From the NCBI GenBank assembly GCA_038496445.1, contig JALMLS010000420.1, positions 682,001-746,000 on the forward strand: DNA of 64,000 bases, written 5' to 3'. This DNA is from Trichosphaerium sp. ATCC 40318 (taxonomy: Eukaryota; Protista; Tubulinea). Positions within the stretch are counted from its first letter, which is position 1. Each line of letters begins with the position of its first letter. Below, in pieces: positions 14,760 to 64,000 of this stretch. The notes below the pieces were generated by a model, which did not search any database, had not been told where the DNA came from, and worked only from the letters and a program-made list of their open reading frames with translations. Position numbers and translations under genes: made by a program.

Positions 14760-17700
14760 TTAAATATGGGTGTTTTTCTTTGTAGTGATAGCCTTCTTGA
14801 TCATCTAACCGTAATAGTAAGTACACAGCACTAATTTTGAATATTTTACACCTCATAAGTCTTAGCAGCTTCAACTCCAGAAGGGTTTGAACTCGAAGTC
14901 TGTTTAATTATTTTTTTCAAAACATTTCTAACTTTAGTAGTAGCAAGTGTGGGTATCATGTCATCAATTGAAGTGCAAGCTCTGGGACAACATGTTAGTT
15001 TGTTAACAAGACATTGTAGAAGCCCAAAGGATTGAAACTTGTGCAAAAAGAACTAATAACTTACCCTAAAAACTGTGCTATTGATATTTTGATGTCATCG
15101 AGATATGCTCCATGGTTTGTTGTTAGGCTTATGACCTCTAACAAAGTATTGTTATCAAGTTGTTTGGCATATTTGCTTTCAATAATCGCAGTGTAAACAT
15201 CACACAAGCCCTTCATCAAGTGACTTTTACAATAAGATTGTTTACTTTGAAGCAGTGAGGTTTGAATAGCAGCATATCTCAAGGTGGGTTCAACATAACA
15301 TTCATATTCATCACCAACAGCTGTCAAGATAGATGCAAGGCAAGATCCTAAGCTCCCTAAACAATCTTTCTCGGCACTTTCTTTGGAATATAAGTTTGGC
15401 CATTGTTCAACACTAGCAAGTCTCTTCTAATTTCAAGTTAGGTGTATAACTAGAAAGGCCTGTTTTTGGAAAGCAATTGATTTACCTCAACATCAAATAA
15501 CACTTGCATCACAGATTTGATGTGTTTACCAAACTGGGCTCCTTGTTGGCATGCGCGATAAGCTATAAGCTTTATCAAATTGCAAATAACCTATACCAAC
15601 TTAATTTAATGCCTATTCCAAATATCTCACGCTGTCGTCTGTTATTTTTTGCATCTTTATCTGTTGTACTAACAAAGGTACAATGTTGCGATAGATTGTT
15701 AATGTTGGATAGGCTAATAATTGTTACTTCTCACAAGTTAGAACACAGTGACTCACAAATTGCAATGTGACGCAAACGTGATATTGCTGTATGTTGTAAT
15801 TGTTTTTGTTCATCACAACTAACTTCAGCGTACATCAAGCTAACAAGCACTGACATAAGGTTATGTCAATTGAGCCTACAATAACATCAAATACACGCAA
15901 AATAAAGCAAAACATACCCATTTCTCTGATTACATCACAAACTGCTTTTGTCATACAATTGATAAAATTTGCTTTCAAACTTTTATCTATGGAAGGTGTA
16001 TGCAAAGACATAGTTTCAATGGCTTTCACCATATTAAACAATATGTCTTGCTTTCTGTGCTCAATTCTTCTTCCACGTAATGCAATCAGTACTGATTCTA
16101 GAGCTTTTATAATATCTGTTCCTTGTTGGTGAAAAAGAATTGAACCAGGCCTACACTTCTTGTTACTATTTTGTGAATTCTAAATGTATTACTGCAGTAA
16201 ATTGTCAAAATCAATTATTTCCACTAGCTTTTCAAGTATTTCTTCTTTGTTAACATCTCTCTTAGTAACCAGAAAAGGTTAAAACAATAGTGGTAATACT
16301 AGGTTGAAATGTACCCAGTCAGCACCATGATATGCTGTCATTGTGTAAACGAACAAAGCTACATCAAACATGTGTTCTGCATCATCCAAATGAGTAATAA
16401 TTTCGGTTTTTGTTTCGTCAGTCATTTGATGGACTATAACATAGATGCCCAAAACCTTGCTGCAAATAATAAACCCAAAATTGTAAAAAAATAATGAGAA
16501 GACCTTATTCCACATTTTGAGCAAAAACAAACAATAAAAATGATAAAGGACAGGACATACAATGCATCTCTCCTGATGCTGGGATGTGGGCTATCAAGAG
16601 CTTCCAATGCCATTCTTTCAATCTATACACATGGTTAAGTAAATAATATTGAGTTTGTATTACATCTTCAGCCATATCATAGATTTCATCAACTCGATAG
16701 GAGGTAGAAAAATGGGAAAGCAATTGGATTGCAGTTCGTCTTGCATGCCGATCAGAAACATTAAATACATTATTACTGATATAAGTAATTGTTGATTTTA
16801 AGCGTTGTTTGGCTTCATCTGGCTTTTTAGTTGTTAGAAATGGACTAAAAAGCACTAGCATAAAAACGTACAACACTTAAAACTTCGTCAGAAAAAATAT
16901 CTTGCCAGAATTCGCTGTGTAAAAGCATTGGAGCAATTTCCTTATAAAAAGGATGAGAAAAATAGGTGCTAGTTCTTCAAATACTTCCACGTGCGAGCGG
17001 CTCAATTTCACAATAAACTCAAAGTGCGTACCTTCATGAACGATTTCTCGTTTAACGTTTTACACAGTCGCTTTGACACAAGTCTCAGTGTAAATACGTT
17101 ATTGGTGCTTAAGTACAACACAATCTCGGTTATTATGTCATACGGCACTGAATGAAGTGTAGCGGCTTCCTAAAAAAACGCGAAGTAAATACTAATTCTT
17201 TAGCTCCTTACGTGTAGTAAAAAAAAAAGTTACGTGTAGTAAAAGTATTTCGTCATTTATTTTTACTGATGTGATCTTTTGTGTACAAAGTTACATTGAA
17301 TAGCAAGCTAGCAGCCTTGCGCCTACTAGTGGTGAATTTCGGCGTGTTATCAGGTGTCATACTGTCGATAATGGCATGTAAAGATGTTAAGGTCAGTTTC
17401 ATAAGACCTCGTATCATGCGACATTTCTCATTTTGTACCCGACCCTTTTCAACATTACACCATGGCATCTGGTTGGCCTTATCCACAGAGCAAAATTTGG
17501 CCTTATAAAAGGAATGCAAAACGGCTTTGTCAGTTCTGGGATGACCTACAAATAAATCAAGCTCTTTTTCTGCATTTTCAAGTAGATTTGGATTTGTGGC
17601 TCGAAGAATGCGATTGATCAAAACAGGCTTGTTGCCAGCTGATTTAAGTAGTAGCTCCTTGCATATATGCTGAAGCTCTGGTTTGTGTTTGGATTTTAGA

Positions 17701-19528
17701 GTTTCCTCTGTCCATCTCAATATTTTTTTTCGTTTTTTTGCTTGTTGCTTGCTGCAGTTGTAACAAGACCATGAATCGCCCTCAATGTTTTCCTTGTGCT
17801 CCTCAGAATCCCAATTAAGACATTCAGTGTGATACCAAAGTTCACAATCATCACACAAAATCATTTCATGTCCTTCAATTTCTTTGTTTTCAAATTTACA
17901 TTCATCTATGCAATGATATTCGACAGCATCAGGGAGGGGTTTGAGAAGGATTTTTTCTTTCTCCTGCAATACTTCAACATCTTTTAAAGAGAGTCCAGTC
18001 AGAGTTGATACTAAACGACAGTTGTCTCCTAATCCAGCATAGCCTTTTTCTTGAACTAATTTGACCAAAGTGGGTCTCGAAAATGTTAATAGTGCATTGT
18101 ATTCAGCTAACGTCACTGGGTTTTTTTTTTTGGTTTTGAATGAAGTCCTCCATCTGTGTGCTAATAAACGCCATTCTTTAACTTTGCCAGTTTTCATTTG
18201 AACCTTTTTGAATGAGGCAATGACCCCTGATGGGTTTACTGCTGCACGCCAAGTACCAACGGGCAAGTTATGAGATAGCACATCAAACAATGCTTTTTCA
18301 TGAGTACTTGGAAGAGACACAGTAACCCCTCCTTTTGAACCGTTTACTGTAAAAGCTTGCACCCAGTCTAAAAAGTCTCGATCCATAAAACGTGCATCCA
18401 AAACTGAATGTGGACAGTAGCCATAAAAGTCTCGATATTTTACCATTAACGTTTTAGCAATATCTAAATGAATGAGAAATAACCCACGTGATGCATACAT
18501 ACCTAACGGAGTCTCTCTAGGTGTCCAATGAGGGTACACTGCTAATATGTATGGTTTTTGACTATGTTTTGAAGAGAAAACTGCATGAACGAAAACCATT
18601 GCTCCAAGTTCATGTGGTTTACCAGGTATTTTTACAGTGTTTTCACCTTTTCCCTTCCAAGCATATATAGTTTCGTCTATAGCAGAGACTTCACCAGCAT
18701 TCCAAGCTGTCATAAAGTTGGCTGAAAGCATATCACACAGATGATGGATGTTTGCATTCAGACACTCATTTAATATGCTGATTCTTGTTGTTTCAAGAAA
18801 CTTTGATTGTTTCCAGTCCAGGTCACTTGCTTTAAATCTTTTAATAGCCTCACGTAAATCATTTAACCCTAATTGCTGTTACTAAAACACTAAAAAACTT
18901 TGTGTGCCTGATTCTAGTTCATACAGCCACAGAATTCCAAAATATTTCATAATCTCAGAAACAGTTATTGGTGTTTTCCAAAATGAATTTAACTTGACAC
19001 CTTTTTTTGTTCGGGCAGTGTATATAATACCTCGTTGAGCTTCAGAGCATGTTGCAAGATATTCCCAGACTCTCATTGGAACCAGCTTTGAATAAATAGA
19101 TTTAACTGAGTAATTCCCTCTGTCAAACAACGCAAAATTAGGTTCTGATACTTGAACTTGCTTCGGCTCTTTGATGGAGTGGAATTCCTCATTTAACACT
19201 TCCCAACCTTGTTGTTTTACTTTGAGAAGGCTCTCAGAGATTTGTACTAGATAGGCACACTGTTTGGCAGTGTTTTCTTTGCTACGTTGTAGTCTACGGG
19301 CTTTTTCTGCAGCTCTTTTTGCATTTTGCCTGTCTGCGTTATTTTGCACTTTGGCCTCCAGAGCGCTGATGTCCATCACGTACAAAGGTATGCAGGCACA
19401 AAAAGAAGACGTTTTACTAATATTTACTACACGTAAAAAAAATTTTTACTACACGTAAGGAGTTTAGAGGTGTTGTTTACGCTTAAAGTGGATTTTATTG
19501 ACTTTTTGGGCGTATACAAAGCTGCCAT
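14760..19528 (-). CDS. F-box protein with helical (HEAT/ARM-like) body; intron 1 carries the transposon
   Basis: Exon 1 19528-19481 (MAALYTPKKSIKSTLS|GTAAAC). Exon 2 starts after TTTTTAG at 17170 and encodes the F-box LHSVPYDIITEIVLYLSTNNVFTLRLVSKRL. Helical exons follow to about 14760. A paralogue with matching exons is at 63342+. The 3' end is approximate. Confidence 0.7.
17204..19462 (-). mobile_element. piggyBac-like DNA transposon, 2259 bp, 40-bp bipartite TIRs, TTTAG direct repeats on both sides
   Basis: Both ends read CTCCTTACGTGTAGTAAAAA-N6-TTACGTGTAGTAAA (17204-17243 and the reverse complement of 19423-19462). TTTAG lies at 17199-17203 and 19463-19467. The transposase gene fills the interior. 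Confidence 0.93.
17253..19376 (-). CDS. piggyBac-like DDD transposase (~680 aa) with inserted SAP-like, PHD and SAP domains; 1-2 short introns
   Basis: AIDETIYAWKG..KIPGKPHELG (D1), VLDARF (D2) and SVDKANQ (D3) match piggyBac motifs. PHD C..C..MILCDDCELWYHTECL..WSCYNC; SAP LKSKHKPELQHICKELLLKSAGNKPVLINRIL. Intron 18869-18907 removes the in-frame stops joining the two ORFs. There is a probable in-frame intron at 18464-18502. Confidence 0.88.
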
Positions 19529-19695
19529 GGTTGAAAGACGGCTAACGTGTTAACGCTTGAGTTTTGAAAAAACGTGACTTGTCACGTGATCTTAGACCAA
19601 TAAACTGGCATCACTTCATGCTAAGCTTGTTACAGGAGTTCTGTTGACTACAAAATGTGTATGTAAAAACTGCTCTAAGTCAAACGGCATCAAAA
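19529..19695. promoter_or_regulatory. Bidirectional promoter with GTCACGTGA E-box and CCAAT box
   Basis: Divergent ATGs at 19528 and 19696; GTCACGTGA at 19581-19589 and CCAAT near 19597. Confidence 0.45.
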
Positions 19696-20360
19696 ATGAG
19701 TAGCAGCGCAGCATCGTTATTTTTAGTATGCGTAGTACTTGTCGTAGCACAGAATACGCCCAATCTTCGCGTACCGATTAAATTCACGTTCAATGAGTCT
19801 TTTACGTGTGGCAATGGCAATTTCAGCAATAGCGGACTTTGGTTATCGCCAGAATCGCCTAGAGAGCAGGTAGCCGCGTTTTATTGTTGAATTACTCACT
19901 GAATGTAGCCAGACATGCTTTTTGACATGTCTTGCGGAGATACGAAACCTGGGCTCTTTTTAGTACCACTAGCAGGAGATTTAGCCGTGTACTGGTACAA
20001 AACATGATAAAAACGCTTCACATATTCAAAACCGCATAGTGACGCAGGTGCAATACCATTGACGAATGTATCAGCAGAAGATTACCAATTTGCTTCGTGT
20101 GAACCTGCAGGAACTGTAGAGATTGGCCACAGTTACTTTGTCATTATAGCACGCTCATACGAGAGGTTAGCGTTGTTTTTAAACGGTTTAACTAACGAAC
20201 GCTTTGCAGAGTGATGTTTGCTTTTCATGTTGACAAAGTCGGACCTATTCCAGCAACAACAGCAACAAGCATGGACATAACTTATGGTGTTTTCATTTTC
20301 GAACAAATAAAAGTGATCAATGAGTCGCCTGGATTTTCATGGTCTAAACCAATCGCATGA
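19696..20360 (+). CDS. Hypothetical secreted protein; multi-exon
   Basis: Signal peptide MSSSAASLFLVCVVLVVA; exons join through short GT-AG introns to TGA at 20360. Confidence 0.6.
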
Positions 20361-27924: not shown

Positions 27925-29281
27925 ATGATGCAGTATATGCTTATAATAGCGTTGGCATTGTGTATAGGCAAAACAATGGCGTCATGTTCCGAATTTGCGC
28001 ATTGCAAGTCGTGCGCCAACGCCTCTTCGTGGATTAGCAACTGTAGGTGGTGTCCTAAGGACCAACGTTGTCACGCTTACGGCTCCCTTTTGAACACTTG
28101 TTCAGAAGATGAAAATATCAAAAACCCGATGTACTGCCCGCCAGGTACGACACCACGTGCTCGATTTATCTTCATGATCTTCACAATCTTTTTTCGGTTT
28201 TTTTTTTTTTTCAACACGAAAATCACTAATATAGTCGCATTTGACTTGCTTTGCAGCTTACTCAGCTCTTCTAGTAAACAAGCAAACTGATTTTGATCTC
28301 AATATGGCGTATGCTATGCTTGGGTACAGCAATGCCACAAAAGCTGAAGATCCAGCGTTAGCAATACCCAAAACAGCGACGCTTCTAGGGAAATGGCTCT
28401 TTCCCGCAATAAATACTTCAACATTCGGCTTCATGGCCAAGGACGATAGTCAAAGTCAGATTATACTTGCGTTCCGCGGTACAGTCGAAATTAAACAACT
28501 AATGGAAGAAGTTCTTAACTCTGAAGGCGTACCATACCCTGGTGCTCCATGTACACTAAAAAAAAACCACTTCGATTTGAGTACTAATTTTTCATTAGCT
28601 TTGACAATTCTCAAGTATTTCTATGCTGCTTGGTTTCCATTTGTACAACCAATGAATACCATACTGAAAGAACAGCTACAAAAACATTCTAACTATACCG
28701 TGCTCGTAACCGGCCACTCACTTGGCGCCGCTATTGCATCGCTAATGGCTTTCGAAATAGCCAGAGCGAAGATTGCAACTCCTGTGTTGTACACTTTCGG
28801 ACAACCTAGAACAGGTAGCATGGAATACGCCGATGCTCATAACAAAGCTGTACCGCAGTCATATAGGGTGGTAAACAACAGAGATCCTGTACCACATTTG
28901 AATTTGTGCGTACCAAGCGCAACGGAAAAAAAGTGTAAATTTACACTCACTTCATGGAGCCCTTGGTACGAGACTTACCTCCAAACTTTATCCTTTTTAC
29001 GTTATGTTAGGCATCACGGGACTGAGATGTTCTTTGGCGCAGGAGAATATAAAAATCAAGTCATGTGTGGATATAGAGAGTGTACACGACAACCCTTTGG
29101 AGAAGACCATTCTTGTGCTGATGGTTTTATAAACTTACCTACTGCCATATTCGCTCCTGGAGTTAGTAAATTAAAACGGATAGTTCTTATTTCTGTATGG
29201 GCTGTAGAGCTTGTTGAACAACATACAATAGAATACTGGAAAGCACTGTCAGATGGATATTGCGGAGTCAACGCACAATAA
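27925..29281 (+). CDS. Secreted PSI-domain + class 3 lipase
   Basis: Signal peptide; CSEFAHCKSC..CRWCPKDQRC (PSI); AFRGT, VTGHSLGAA, YTFGQPRTG, RVVNNRDPVPHL. Confidence 0.9.
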
Positions 29282-37370: not shown

Positions 37371-38490
37371 TTAATTCTTTATTTTTTGTTGTTTTTTTTG
37401 TCGTTTTTTTTCGCATTTAAGTGCGTATTGCTTCATTTTCTTTGAAATTTTCTTTGTGTCCTTCGCATTAGCCCAATTTCTCTTTACAGTTTTTTTGAAT
37501 TCTTTTGTAGATAGAGCGTTTTTTGTGATAAATGGATGTTTCAGCAACTCTGTAATGTATGATTGATTCTCATGGCTCAAGCATTGTTCAACAAAAGAGG
37601 TGAAGTCCTTATCAAAACCCCAAATGTTACGAAATGTAATCTCAGTTTGCTTTGTAACATAAAAACTTTCGCAGAAAGAGTCATCGTGAGGTTCCACTGA
37701 GGCCATTTCGCCAACTCCAAGTTGCATGGCCATCACGCCAATGGCGTAAATGTCTGTTGATCTGCTATATCCATACAGCTGGGCATGTGGTGACACAAAA
37801 CCAGATGTACCAATAAATTGTTTTGTCCTGTTTGATTTTTCTTTGGCGAGTCCAAAATCAGCCAACTGAGGAATAAAGTCTTTAGTGATCAAAATATTCT
37901 CCGCTTTTATATCTCCGTGAGTAATCCCAGATTTATGAAGCTCAAAAGCTGCTTCGAGAGTTGCTTTTACTATTGTAGCAACCTCATTAATATCTTTAAA
38001 GTGACTTAGTTCGGTGGCATCGCAGAGTGCCCTTTGCATGACCAATGAAGCACCGTCATCTTTCTCAATATAACCAACTGCCGCCATAATATTCTCTGAA
38101 GGAACAGCTCGAGATAATGTATACTCATTTTTCTAACAAAAACAGTTAGAACAATAATAAATAAACGTGGAAAAAAAACGAAAAATTTTTACACAAAAAG
38201 AAAGCCAACAAGTTGACTTAGTGAAAAAAAAAAAATGCTGAAAGCTAAAGACGTACCAGGGTTTCAGTCAGGGCTTCGATCTTTTCGTCGCTTTCATCAG
38301 TTTTGTTAACGACTTTGATAGCAAGCTTCTCGCCTGTTTTTCTATCTTTGGCCTTGAACACAGTGCCGCAACCGCCAGTTCCAAGAGGAATAGTAGACGT
38401 AACTTTAATGCCAGTTTTCTGAGTCCTGCCGGTAATGCCGTAGAAGAATGATCGTGCACATCTGGAAATCGATTGGATAAATTGGGCCAT
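37371..38490 (-). CDS. Ser/Thr protein kinase (STE-like), two exons
   Basis: LGTGGCGTV, LAIK, HGDIKAENIL, DFG, GTSGFVSP, DIYAIG. Confidence 0.92.
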
Positions 38491-60616: not shown

Positions 60617-61717
60617 TACGGCGCTGCAGTTTGTACAGATACAACAATAAAGTTTTTATGGCGATTTCTGACATTCCTTATGTGACAAACAATGAAACTT
60701 AGACAATTATTTAAACGACAGAGAGTGTATCACGCTGATATCGGTTCGTAAGTGTAGTGCATGCTGTAATAAGAAAAACGAGAAAAGTTTCAAAAAAGGA
60801 GTTTGAATCTTTCAGATACCTATTGCTAGGGATGTTATGGCAAAACAATATCGTTGAAAAAATCGCAGTTGCACTTTATTGAACCAGTTGGCAATAGGAT
60901 TGGAGATGAAATTAAAACATACCTCTTTGCTACGATACGTTCAACCTTAGTTTTGAAATCAAACGACACCCCACTACACCTATAACATGCTTGAATGTTC
61001 CAGCTGTAGATGACTTGAGATTGCAGGTTATTGCAGCAGGAGAGCATGCATGGAAACATCATGTCATGTCGTTGGGTGTTGGTATATGGGGACGTTTCAT
61101 TAAGTCAACCAAAGACTCCCTAAATCCGCCCCGCTGTGACTAAAAGTGCATGTCTATAGATTATGTGTGTTTGAGGTTACCCTGCATTCATTAAGCAGCA
61201 GGAGAGCTTAGTCCGAGCTTGCTTTAATTCAAGTTTCTGCGAACGCGTCAAAACAGGTTCAGACGCTGTTCGAGCTGGTTGTGCTCTTCCTTTTTAGTTG
61301 ATCCTAAGGCTACAAACAATGGCTTAAGTAGGTTCAATCAGTCTCATACTATTATTTTACGCAATAGGCATCATCGCTTTGAGAATTGGTTAGAGGATTG
61401 ACTAACCGAAAAGTTTGCCCGGCATAATAGAATTACACAGATTCGCGTTTTTTAGCATTCAAATACGTTATCAAGTTGGTTTAGACCATTTGTACGTTTT
61501 TTAAATCCAACAACTAGTATCTTTCGTTTAATCGCGTATGAAGTGCTTTTTCGTAATGCCTACAACAAAAATACGCGTGGAAGCGACCTTAGCTAGGTTC
61601 CTCGTATGGTTTTTTGCCGACAGTCGTAAATTTGTTGTCCCGTTTTCTCTTCCAACTTTCGGCAACACGTGTTTGTTTAGGGCTGTTCTAATTTTACTTT
61701 TTAGTCAGACAGTGATC

Positions 61718-63025
61718 ATGGAGTTGCTCTATCTCCCACTTGAGATGATTGTCCAGGTTTTATATAATTTATCTCAGAAGGAGCGATGTGCAGCAGCACA
61801 AGCATGTCGCGCATTGGCGAACACAGTGAAGCAACATTTTATTACGAGACGAAGAATTTTAATCGAGTCAAAAGAAGACATTAAACAAGTCTCAAAGCGC
61901 AAGCATTTACTAAAATCAGCAACAGTAGTGTGTTACCGTGAGATACCAGATGACAAAATCTCAAAACTAGCCGGTGTCCATACGATATACCTTCAGCTTT
62001 GCTGCAACTTAACATCAAAGGGATTAAGTACGCTAGCTGGAGTACACACGATAAATATCGGCGGATGCCCGAAAGTAACAGACTCCGGTGTTAAAGCCTT
62101 AGCTGGAGTACATTCTCTAACAATGTGGTATTGTCCAAGGATTACTGGAAGTTGCCTCAAGTCGTTATCTGGTGTGCACTATATAAACTTAAGTGGTACT
62201 AAAGGAAAAAATAAAGGACTTGGAAGCATTGCTAGTGCTCATTCAGTCAACCTTGGCTTTTGTAAGTGGTTATCAGATGAAGGTGTGTCAATGCTATCAG
62301 GCGTTCATACTATTCAAGTTAACTCAACTAATGTAACGGATAAAGGACTAAAGGCATTGAATGGAGTACATACTATAAATGTTGGAATTTGTAGGAATAT
62401 AACATCAAAAGGTGTTGCTGCTCTTGCTGGAGTTCATGCTATATACTTACAACATTGTATCCATATTACAGACAATGCCATAATACCATTAGCTGGAGTA
62501 CATACGATAAATCTTGCCTGTTGTGACAAGATAACAGATAGAGGCATTTCTGCGCTTGCTGGTGTTCATTCAATAGATCTGACAAGATGTACAAAAATAA
62601 CTAGCAAGGGAGTCAACTCATTACATGGTGTTCATTATATTTCACTCCGTGGATGTCATAGAGTTACTGATGAAGGTATATCAGCTTTAGCTGGTGTACA
62701 TACAATAGATTTGGCCAATTGCAAAAGAGTCTCTGATGTTGGAATTAAAAAACTTTCGGGTGTTCATATCATCGATCTTATTGGCACAAAAGTGACTGAT
62801 GATGGCTTAATGAGTCTTGCTGGTGTACATACAATTAAACTTACAGGTAATGAGCATATTACAGATAAAGGTATCGCCTCTCTTAGCGGTGTACACACTA
62901 TCTTTATTGCGTACTGTCCGAAAGTAACAAAAAAAGGTGTAAACGCTCTTGTTAATGTGCATGCTGTCCACAGTAACAAGCTTCTTTTGAAAGTAAGTGC
63001 TGGAAGAAATAAATCAATTGTATAG
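61718..63025 (+). CDS. F-box + LRR protein (regular LAGVHTIxLxxCxxITDxG repeats), intronless
   Basis: LLYLPLEMIVQVLYNL F-box followed by about 15 21-22-aa Cys-containing LRRs. Confidence 0.9.
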   Translation: MELLYLPLEMIVQVLYNLSQKERCAAAQACRALANTVKQHFITRRRILIESKEDIKQVSKRKHLLKSATVVCYREIPDDKISKLAGVHTIYLQLCCNLTSKGLSTLAGVHTINIGGCPKVTDSGVKALAGVHSLTMWYCPRITGSCLKSLSGVHYINLSGTKGKNKGLGSIASAHSVNLGFCKWLSDEGVSMLSGVHTIQVNSTNVTDKGLKALNGVHTINVGICRNITSKGVAALAGVHAIYLQHCIHITDNAIIPLAGVHTINLACCDKITDRGISALAGVHSIDLTRCTKITSKGVNSLHGVHYISLRGCHRVTDEGISALAGVHTIDLANCKRVSDVGIKKLSGVHIIDLIGTKVTDDGLMSLAGVHTIKLTGNEHITDKGIASLSGVHTIFIAYCPKVTKKGVNALVNVHAVHSNKLLLKVSAGRNKSIV

Positions 63026-63341
63026 AAGTTAGGGTGGTCAACTATTCGTCATTATTCGACTTACAGTTTGGCAATTTTTTCAAACACAAGTCTTTTTTGA
63101 AATTTTTCACTGTAGTTCTTGCAACCTAAACTGGCCTTTTACAATCAGTTTCATCCTCTGCATGATGCACAACAAATATCAAGGCTATTGACAGTATTTA
63201 AGATCCCTAAAACACATATTGTGTCTCATGAACACCTCGACAATAGAAATAATCTGTTCAGGATAAAAATTGAAAAACAGTGTTTATTTTTGCAGAATAA
63301 AAGTCAACGGTATTTTCGTAACGCCGTTTCACCTCATAATA

Positions 63342-64000
63342 ATGGCAGCCTTGGATACGCCCAAAAAGCCAACAAAAACCCATTTTAGCGTAATCAACAT
63401 CTCATGATAGTAAACGTGCTTATTCCGCCATTTAGGAAGAGCCTACTCTTTATTCAGTGCCTTATGACGTAATAACCGAGATTATGTTGTATTTAAGCAC
63501 CAAAAACGTATTTACACTGAGACTTGTGTCAAAGCGACTGTGTAGAACATTAAACGAGAAATCCTTCATGAAGGTACACAAATTGAGTCCTTTATTGTAA
63601 GCCACGCGCAGCTTTATCCAGTGGTATTGAAGCGTTTGCAAATTAATTTGACTACTCCTCATCCTTTTTCCAGGGTATTGTGCCAATGCTTTTGCACAGC
63701 GACTTCTGGCGTGGTATTTTTGAGGAACAAAATGTTGTACGGTTTTTTTTAGCGTGACCAAACACGTGCTTTTTTATTTGATTTTTTAATCGCTAAACTA
63801 CTTTTAAGCCAGACGAAGCCCGACCATGTTTAGACGCAATGATTGCTTTTTTTCTGAAGAATGTGTTTAATGTCGCTGATCGACATGCAAGGCAAACTGT
63901 ATTCCAATTACTTTCTCATTTTTTGGATGTTCATAGAGAAATGTATGCTATGGTCGAAGATGTATAACATTTAATATCATGTTTGCATACTTAGCCACGT
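63342..64000 (+). CDS. F-box gene paralogous to 14760-19528; partial or degenerate
   Basis: MAALDTPKKPTKTHFS, a 46-nt intron, then EEPTLYSVPYDVITEIMLYLSTKNVFTLRLVSKRL with high nucleotide identity to 17030-17170. An in-frame TAA at 63965 (or a GT donor) lies near the window end. Confidence 0.75.

Follow-up and report, generated by a model that had tools for sequence, protein, structure and literature searches.

A divergent piggyBac-type DNA transposon of Trichosphaerium sp. ATCC 40318 whose transposase lacks a C-terminal Cys-rich domain and carries a SAP-like/PHD/SAP module within its core

The piggyBac element of T. ni (PDB 6x67 and 6x68) moves by cut-and-paste between short inverted ends with internal repeats, and its transposase has helical DNA-binding regions flanking an RNase-H-like D-D-D core, together with an insertion domain rich in beta structure. 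A TTAA target and a C-terminal Cys-rich domain that binds the element ends are treated as defining for piggyBac and are used as survey filters. The exceptions to TTAA in a published survey were 4-bp variants only (PMC5381638), and a piggyBac mining study of 2025 dropped every element without both a Cys-rich domain and a duplication of the TTAA type (PMC13461360). Here we analyze a complete DNA transposon of 2,259 bp with a single transposase gene, located on the minus strand at positions 17204-19462 of a 64,000-nt stretch of Trichosphaerium sp. ATCC 40318 (assembly GCA_038496445.1, contig JALMLS010000420.1, positions 682,001 to 746,000; hereafter the window). It is like T. ni piggyBac in all the features named in the first sentence, and T. 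ni piggyBac is its best fold and profile match. However, the window element has no C-terminal Cys-rich domain, carries ~200 extra residues before the helix that bears the third catalytic Asp, has CTCC..GGAG rather than CCC..GGG termini, is flanked by a 5-bp TTTAG rather than TTAA, and has an Asn at the fourth Asp position. Myotis piggyBat (9c0f), the second-best fold and profile match, differs from the window element in the same respects.

Two further systems invite comparison. In the domesticated ciliate proteins PiggyMac and Tpb2, a piggyBac-family nuclease is joined to a zinc domain that binds the histone H3 tail, and chromatin guides cutting (PMC8086355, PMC3861120). However, that domain is the C-terminal Cys-rich one, which in PiggyMac does not have the PHD fold, and both proteins are encoded by immobile host genes, whereas the window element carries an internal, bona fide Pfam PHD finger within a mobile element. 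RAG1/RAG2 and Transib/ProtoRAG provide a functional analogy only: a transposase-derived DDE nuclease is steered by the PHD finger of RAG2, which reads H3 trimethylated at lysine 4 (H3K4me3), and the Transib duplication is also 5 bp, but these systems belong to another superfamily and fold family, carry the PHD finger on a separate subunit, and have no homology to the core analyzed here. Our analysis indicates that the window element is likely a cut-and-paste transposon of the autonomous type that represents a divergent and apparently undescribed lineage of the piggyBac superfamily.

Transposase core and inserted module

Relatives of the transposase came only from an exhaustive HMMER search, as a word-indexed protein search returned none. 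This phmmer search identified 106 related proteins, including a close group at 34-45% identity (P0001/P0107, P0002, P0003, P0004, and fragments) and a distant group at 20-25% identity (E 1e-8 to 1e-10), whose members score ~1e-12 against the Pfam piggyBac model DDE_Tnp_1_7. A scan of metagenome loci gave a single locus, one already in the set. The motifs AIDET, LDARF, and VDKANQ are present in the order given by the original prediction, which was made from the DNA letters and a list of ORFs (open reading frames). Numbered on the C-terminal 541-aa piece, their catalytic residues are D68, D161, and D466; an alignment of 25 relatives shows each of them to be invariant or conserved to at least 90%.

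A family profile built from this alignment matched piggyBac 6x67 (E 2.3e-19) and piggyBat (E 2.5e-11) in the PDB, with the motifs of the first and third Asp aligned. The AlphaFold (AF2) model, with a mean confidence score (pLDDT) of 78, was likewise closest to T. ni piggyBac, the comparison that had been proposed as a check, with 6x67_C as the best fold match (Foldseek E 5.8e-9, VIA Z 22.3, 303 residues) followed by piggyBat (Z 19.1) and Tn5 (Z 16.5). Because the relatives, the conserved triad, the profile, and the fold agree, the core is assigned to the piggyBac type.

The second and third Asp are 305 aa apart in the window transposase, compared with ~101 aa in T. ni piggyBac and 170-378 aa in the relatives. 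The ~200 aa that had been predicted to separate them are thus not the full spacing but match the extra residues, which lie between the insertion domain and the helix bearing the third Asp. Following the beta-rich insertion domain (model strands 184-241), the chain continues with the SAP-like helix pair and a long helix, which lead to a PHD finger, the basic patch KKRKK, and a SAP domain. The two Pfam domains that had been proposed here were both recovered above their cut-offs. The PHD finger matched PF00628 at 31.4 bits (cut-off 24, E 1.9e-7) and has the complete Cys4-His-Cys3 ligand set in the pattern C-x3-C...C-x2-C-x4-H-x2-C...C-x2-C, while the SAP domain matched PF02037 at 27.6 bits (cut-off 23.9, E 2.2e-6) and is modeled as helices 399-408 and 417-428 with pLDDT ~90. 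The family profile also matches the SAP domains of Ku70, SIZ1, DEK, and THO1. As for the proposed SAP-like pair, the model places a confident helix-loop-helix at this position, but homology to SAP is less certain: hhalign aligned the pair in register with the SAP region of the family at a probability of 44% (E 2e-4), and neither a Pfam match nor a PDB sequence match was obtained. A SAP-like identity of the first helix pair is plausible.

The C terminus agrees with the predicted absence of a Cys-rich domain. Just 76 aa with 2 Cys follow the third Asp, and only 9 nt separate the stop codon from the inverted repeat, too few for such a domain or a further exon. The 25 metagenomic relatives all lack a Cys-rich domain at the C terminus as well, and nearly every one that extends to the third Asp ends 60-76 aa beyond it.

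The SAP insertion is common to nearly all relatives scanned, the distant ones included, and occupies the same point (Pfam model positions ~250 to 277), so the module is not a one-off capture. Uncharacterized DDE_Tnp_1_7+SAP proteins, comprising the metagenomic P0023, P0026, P0029, P0031, and P0039 and ESM-Atlas clusters mainly from green algae (Chlorophyta), have the same SAP insertion site, a short tail, and no Cys-rich domain. They are homologous to the window transposase at E 1e-8 to 1e-10 with only 20-25% identity. Unlike it, they contain neither a PHD finger nor a zinc knuckle, and a first SAP-like pair is not clearly recognizable; we found no published description of them. A distant SAP-only relative, P0110 (L010-L018), belongs to a multi-copy element with termini TTCCCCGG; these ends, TTCCCCGGAAGG..., are reminiscent of the CCC ends of piggyBac.

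Within the close group the zinc module varies. All eight zinc ligands, including the unusual C-x3-C first pair, are also found in P0003, while P0107, P0002, P0004, P0012, and P0021 have only a CxxC..CxxC at ligand columns 3, 4, 7, and 8, equivalent to one zinc site. The close group forms a clade with support 100/99, in which the knuckle forms make up a subclade (84/74) and both PHD forms branch outside it. This topology fits an ancestral PHD finger that was later reduced, with the tree leaving the order of events either way. The ORFs of P0107 and P0002 encode 638-654 aa.

These findings support placing the element in a lineage of its own within the piggyBac superfamily, marked by the internal SAP-like/PHD/SAP module and by the missing C-terminal Cys-rich domain, in keeping with the possibly undescribed lineage of the original prediction. 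A literature search for piggyBac elements with SAP, with an internal PHD finger, or with a 5-bp or non-TTAA duplication found no description, Repbase and Dfam lying outside this search. With its demand for both a Cys-rich domain and TTAA, the 2025 mining study would have discarded the lineage. How stagger length is fixed and targets are chosen in the piggyBac fold could be tested on this lineage. Moreover, the lineage is a natural fusion of a DNA transposase and a chromatin reader, with a PHD finger of the histone-reader type in some members, and a possible source of transposases with other target preferences.

Element ends, target-site duplication, and insertion site

The outermost 18 nt of both element ends are identical, and the ends read CTCCTTACGTG, giving the termini 5'-CTCCTT...AAGGAG-3'. 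The elements of the close clade all end in 5'-CTCSTT...AASGAG-3' and are 2.0-2.4 kb in size. Each terminal inverted repeat (TIR) contains two copies of the 14-nt motif TTACGTGTAGTAAA, which was not found elsewhere in the window; nor did the window contain additional copies or miniature inverted-repeat elements sharing these ends. An Rfam search gave no match.

The target-site duplication (TSD) of the family is 5 bp with the consensus nTnAn, often TTnAA-like, in place of TTAA. Among the distinct flanks, position 2 is T in 20/20 and position 4 is A in 17/20. Two flank pairs agree at 5/5 positions, TTTAG on both sides in the window and ATTAA on both sides in L022, a 102-kb long-read contig, and both of these perfect duplications are direct repeats within contiguous assemblies. 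Two further pairs agree at 4/5 positions, with TTTAG and TTTAT (left and right) in L001 and TTGAA and CTGAA in L006. Short-read metagenome contigs swap flanks between copies (L005/L009 and L010-L018) and were counted as single flanks only. The P0110 copies adjoin different host genes (CSN1/RPN7 and HECT), and their contigs recombine flanks.

In the relative of contig L021 (2144-2256), a right end is directly followed by a second left end without its first 4 nt, while the right end of the relative in L007 (2167-2197) runs straight into that element's own 5' region in reverse complement; these are tandem insertions or self-insertions, or possibly end-to-end junctions. The right flank of a PHD-bearing relative in L009 (2359-2400) resembles the 3' half of a tRNA (GGTTCGATTCC...GCCA). 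ARAGORN found no complete tRNA in this flank and no tRNA in the flanks of the relatives, and the L009 contig is probably chimeric. In L020 (2193-3632), a Harbinger-type (DDE_Tnp_4) gene directly adjoins a relative of the element.

In the window, the element occupies intron 1 of an F-box-like gene and points in the same direction as that gene. The insertion point is 66 nt downstream of the host ATG (19528), close to the predicted ~60 bp, and falls inside an intron of 47 nt. A paralogue of the host gene at 63342-63964 has a matching short intron without the element, although within the intron it is too diverged (82%) for this empty site to place the duplication to the base. Two PHD-bearing elements lie 46-66 nt from a host ATG, an observation that is anecdotal in compact genomes.

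Alternative readings and possible role of the module

Several observations weigh against the reading of the window element as an autonomous-type piggyBac transposon with a chromatin-reading module. While the proposed HMMER check recovered PHD and SAP, the protein alone scored 15.5 bits (E 0.011) against a DDE_Tnp_1_7 cut-off of 22.4, so piggyBac membership depends on the fold and on homology through intermediate relatives. The element also lacks three hallmarks of canonical piggyBac: the TTAA target, termini of the form 5'-CCC..GGG-3', and the Cys-rich domain at the C terminus. As most of the metagenomic contigs probably join different copies, full reliability is limited to the two perfect duplications. 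The gene is interrupted by an in-frame TAG TAA, and the cDNA coverage of the element, with a depth of ~3, lies outside both these stops and a proposed 39-nt intron. In addition, most close relatives have a knuckle for just one zinc, so the conserved function of that position cannot be to read histones.

The alternative that survives best is that the window copy, and perhaps the whole family in this genome, is a dead relic, with TAG TAA arising by nonsense changes in a former CAG CAA CAG CAA (QQQQ) and with transcription as host read-through; on balance, we lean toward this account. The two minus-strand ORFs are in the same frame and are interrupted by TAG TAA alone. The stops sit exactly between two conserved blocks, SFLVF (S-Y-x-x-F in the relatives) and LNDLRE (identical in the P0003 element), and the alignment of the N-terminal ORF with P0002 finishes at YFGxxWxxE. 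The surplus over the relatives at this site is exactly six codons, TAG TAA CAG CAA TTA GGG. The simplest account is that a run of Gln codons acquired two nonsense changes, both from C to T. The sense orientation of the element within the host intron also agrees with read-through.

The claim of the original prediction that the ORF is intact after splicing did not hold. When all in-frame GT..AG candidates that would remove TAG TAA were enumerated, none was convincing, as each deletes conserved residues: the 42- and 51-nt candidates remove LNDLRE, and the 30-nt candidate removes the conserved S-aromatic-x-x-F block. A good GTATGA donor at 18924 gives only out-of-frame products. Reassignment of TAA and TAG to Gln was likewise rejected, since TAA or TAG terminates host ORFs whose domains are complete, and both codons occur throughout ORFs read with TGA as the only stop; the code is therefore standard. 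Because of the in-frame TAG TAA, the full-length enzyme is probably not made from the window copy, and we consider this copy to be probably dead. Excision of the stops by an unconventional short intron is unlikely. The suggestion that the copy may be active is accordingly doubtful, given this unexplained double stop.

Against a dead relic, the other ~700 codons are without frameshift or stop, and the perfect ends and perfect duplication suggest a recent insertion despite the stops. Moreover, introns of 39-47 nt exist in the genome, and the element probably has one itself. Removal of positions 18464-18502 restores PLD-IAKTLM as in the relatives, which carry introns of 44-50 nt nearby, and this segment is likely to be an in-frame intron on the basis of its sequence. 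The 492-aa ORF of the original prediction probably includes this intron in retained form, because the 13 residues it encodes are found in no relative. Public assemblies contained no exact match to the 492-aa ORF.

The public runs that contain DNA of the element are SMART-type cDNA, with template-switch oligo sequence as loose ends. Their contigs are 100% identical to the element over 17761-18066, so the window copy, or an identical one, is transcribed. Over this range, no splice occurs inside the PHD or SAP-like region. A second expressed copy (run X2) is ~95% identical and has lost 913 nt internally (17995-18907), where 5 filler bases (TCACT) now stand; it also has 16 non-synonymous versus 4 synonymous changes, two premature stops, and a cDNA 5' end near 19073. 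It is a decaying non-autonomous copy, and its condition adds to the case for a dead relic.

The role of the module concerns the lineage as a whole. Judging from sequence and models, the SAP-type domains and the zinc module might quite possibly bind the repeated 14-nt motifs and so replace the Cys-rich domain in its end-binding role. In addition, the PHD finger could tether the transpososome to H3 tails, probably H3K4me3 at the 5' ends of genes, which we advance as a tentative step. The active sites would be spaced for a 5-nt stagger, a geometry deduced from the observed duplication. The closest solved PHD fingers by sequence include those of DPF2/3, KAT6A, and CHD4, along with TAF3, PHF2, DIDO1, MLL5, and CFP1. 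In a model of the module alone, the fold matches are almost all PHD fingers, mostly H3K4me2/3 readers: PHF8, TAF3 (37% identity), PHF2 (38%), ING4, BPTF, DIDO, and AL1/3. Among solved PHD fingers, TAF3 and PHF2 have the greatest similarity. The finger has a Trp three residues after the fourth Cys, a Met three before the third, and a Tyr two before the first. Its M-I-x-C-D-D-C-x-x-W-Y-H segment and the aromatic residue two before the first Cys match what we take to be the methyl-lysine cage of TAF3 and ING2, which provides a lead. Chromatin steering by the PHD finger is plausible in view of this likeness in sequence and fold to H3K4me3 readers and of the two insertions within ~50-70 bp of a host ATG.

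The zinc and SAP module could instead be purely an end-binding device, a relocated equivalent of the Cys-rich domain without histone reading, in which case the insertion near a start codon would be coincidental, the genome being compact. In canonical piggyBac, the repeats in the ends are bound by a Cys-rich domain that is also a cross-brace finger resembling PHD (PMC5861402, PMC8086355). Most close relatives keep just the CxxC..CxxC knuckle at the PHD position, and the two 14-nt repeats at each end need a binder. However, the PHD fingers of the window element and of P0003 both keep the Trp, Met, and aromatic residues at the presumed cage positions, and the best fold and sequence neighbors are H3K4me2/3 readers rather than the piggyBac Cys-rich domain. 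The positions of the two PHD-bearing elements, 46-66 nt from a host ATG, also argue against a purely end-binding function, which we regard as rather unlikely. A combined proposal in which the PHD finger does read histones is that the clade, present in this genome and in many metagenomes, re-engineered both targeting layers, pairing a 5-nt stagger at TTnAA-like sites in place of TTAA with an internal H3K4me3-reading PHD finger between SAP clamps in place of the Cys-rich domain, for promoter-proximal integration. We consider this proposal doubtful in its full form; if it is true, the intact members (P0107, P0002, and the PHD-bearing P0003 element) would be active and usable as transposases with new target specificity.

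The element could also belong to a separate IS4/Tn5-like eukaryotic superfamily having only the fold in common with piggyBac, a reading that would account for the termini in CTCS, the 5-bp length of the duplication, and the lack of a Cys-rich domain. The strong Tn5 fold match, the Pfam score below cut-off, and the failure of all three element-level hallmarks point in this direction. However, Foldseek and VIA both place piggyBac and piggyBat ahead of Tn5, intermediate relatives match DDE_Tnp_1_7 at 1e-12, and the family profile aligns the motifs of the first and third Asp with those of piggyBac, which makes a separate superfamily improbable. Finally, although domesticated transposases, PiggyMac and Tpb2 among them, typically carry chromatin-reader domains, a domesticated host gene is extremely improbable given the inverted ends and duplication, the absence from the paralogous site, the several copies including a deletion derivative, and the differing flanks of the relatives.

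Feature coordinates and neighboring sequences

The features of the element and its host gene are listed in Table 1.

Table 1. Positions in the window of the parts of the element and of the interrupted host gene
Feature	Position	Strand	Remark
TSD TTTAG, lower-coordinate copy	17199-17203	.	Same 5 nt adjoin both element ends
TIR, 3' end in gene orientation	17204-17243	+	40 nt; two 14-nt motifs TTACGTGTAGTAAA, 22 nt apart
C-terminal 541 codons and TGA stop	17253-18878 (ORF 17256-18878)	-	Catalytic core with inserted module
Third catalytic Asp motif VDKANQ (D466)	17469-17486	-	+3 position is Asn; aligns with the GVDtlDQ motif of 6x67
SAP domain, residues 399-428	17595-17684	-	Pfam PF02037 at 17598-17684 (residues 399-427)
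Basic patch KKRKK after the PHD finger	17724-17738	-	
PHD finger Cys4-His-Cys3, residues 321-375	17754-17918	-	Pfam PF00628 at 17754-17900
SAP-like helix-loop-helix, residues 266-296	17991-18083	-	Model helices 268-277 and 286-294, pLDDT ~90 or higher
Second catalytic Asp motif LDARF (D161)	18387-18401	-	Invariant in the 25-sequence alignment
In-frame intron candidate, GTATGT...CATTTAG	18464-18502	-	39 nt; encodes 13 aa found in no relative
First catalytic Asp motif AIDET (D68)	18669-18683	-	Aligns with the D268 motif of 6x67
In-frame TAG TAA between the two ORFs	18879-18884	-	
N-terminal part of the transposase	18885-19376	-	164 aa from first ATG; BLASTP against P0002 N terminus E 7e-18
TIR, 5' end in gene orientation	19423-19462	-	40 nt; again two 14-nt motifs TTACGTGTAGTAAA
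TSD TTTAG, higher-coordinate copy	19463-19467	.	Repeats the other flank directly, not as its reverse complement
Host intron 1, GTAAAC...TTTTTAG	17170-19480	-	Now 2311 nt; 47 nt minus the element and one TSD copy
Host exon 1 of the F-box-like gene	19481-19528	-	Encodes MAALYTPKKSIKSTLS

Next to the host gene, a divergent plus-strand gene at 19529-19908 encodes a signal-peptide-like product. Its cDNA 5' end, marked by the template-switch oligo, is at 19588, ~60 nt from the ATG of the host F-box gene on the opposite strand, and cDNA proves a 39-nt intron in it at 19870-19908 (GTAGCC...AATGTAG). Farther along the window, an F-box/LRR gene (495-aa ORF) precedes the paralogue of the host gene, the two together spanning 61538-63964; the paralogue and the host F-box gene are ~72-84% identical. 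The window also contains a class-3 lipase ORF at 28241-29281, whose nearest ESM Atlas cluster is from Zoopagomycota (with the 39-47-nt introns, no more than a lead toward an early-diverging fungus), and a protein-kinase fragment at 37371-38087.

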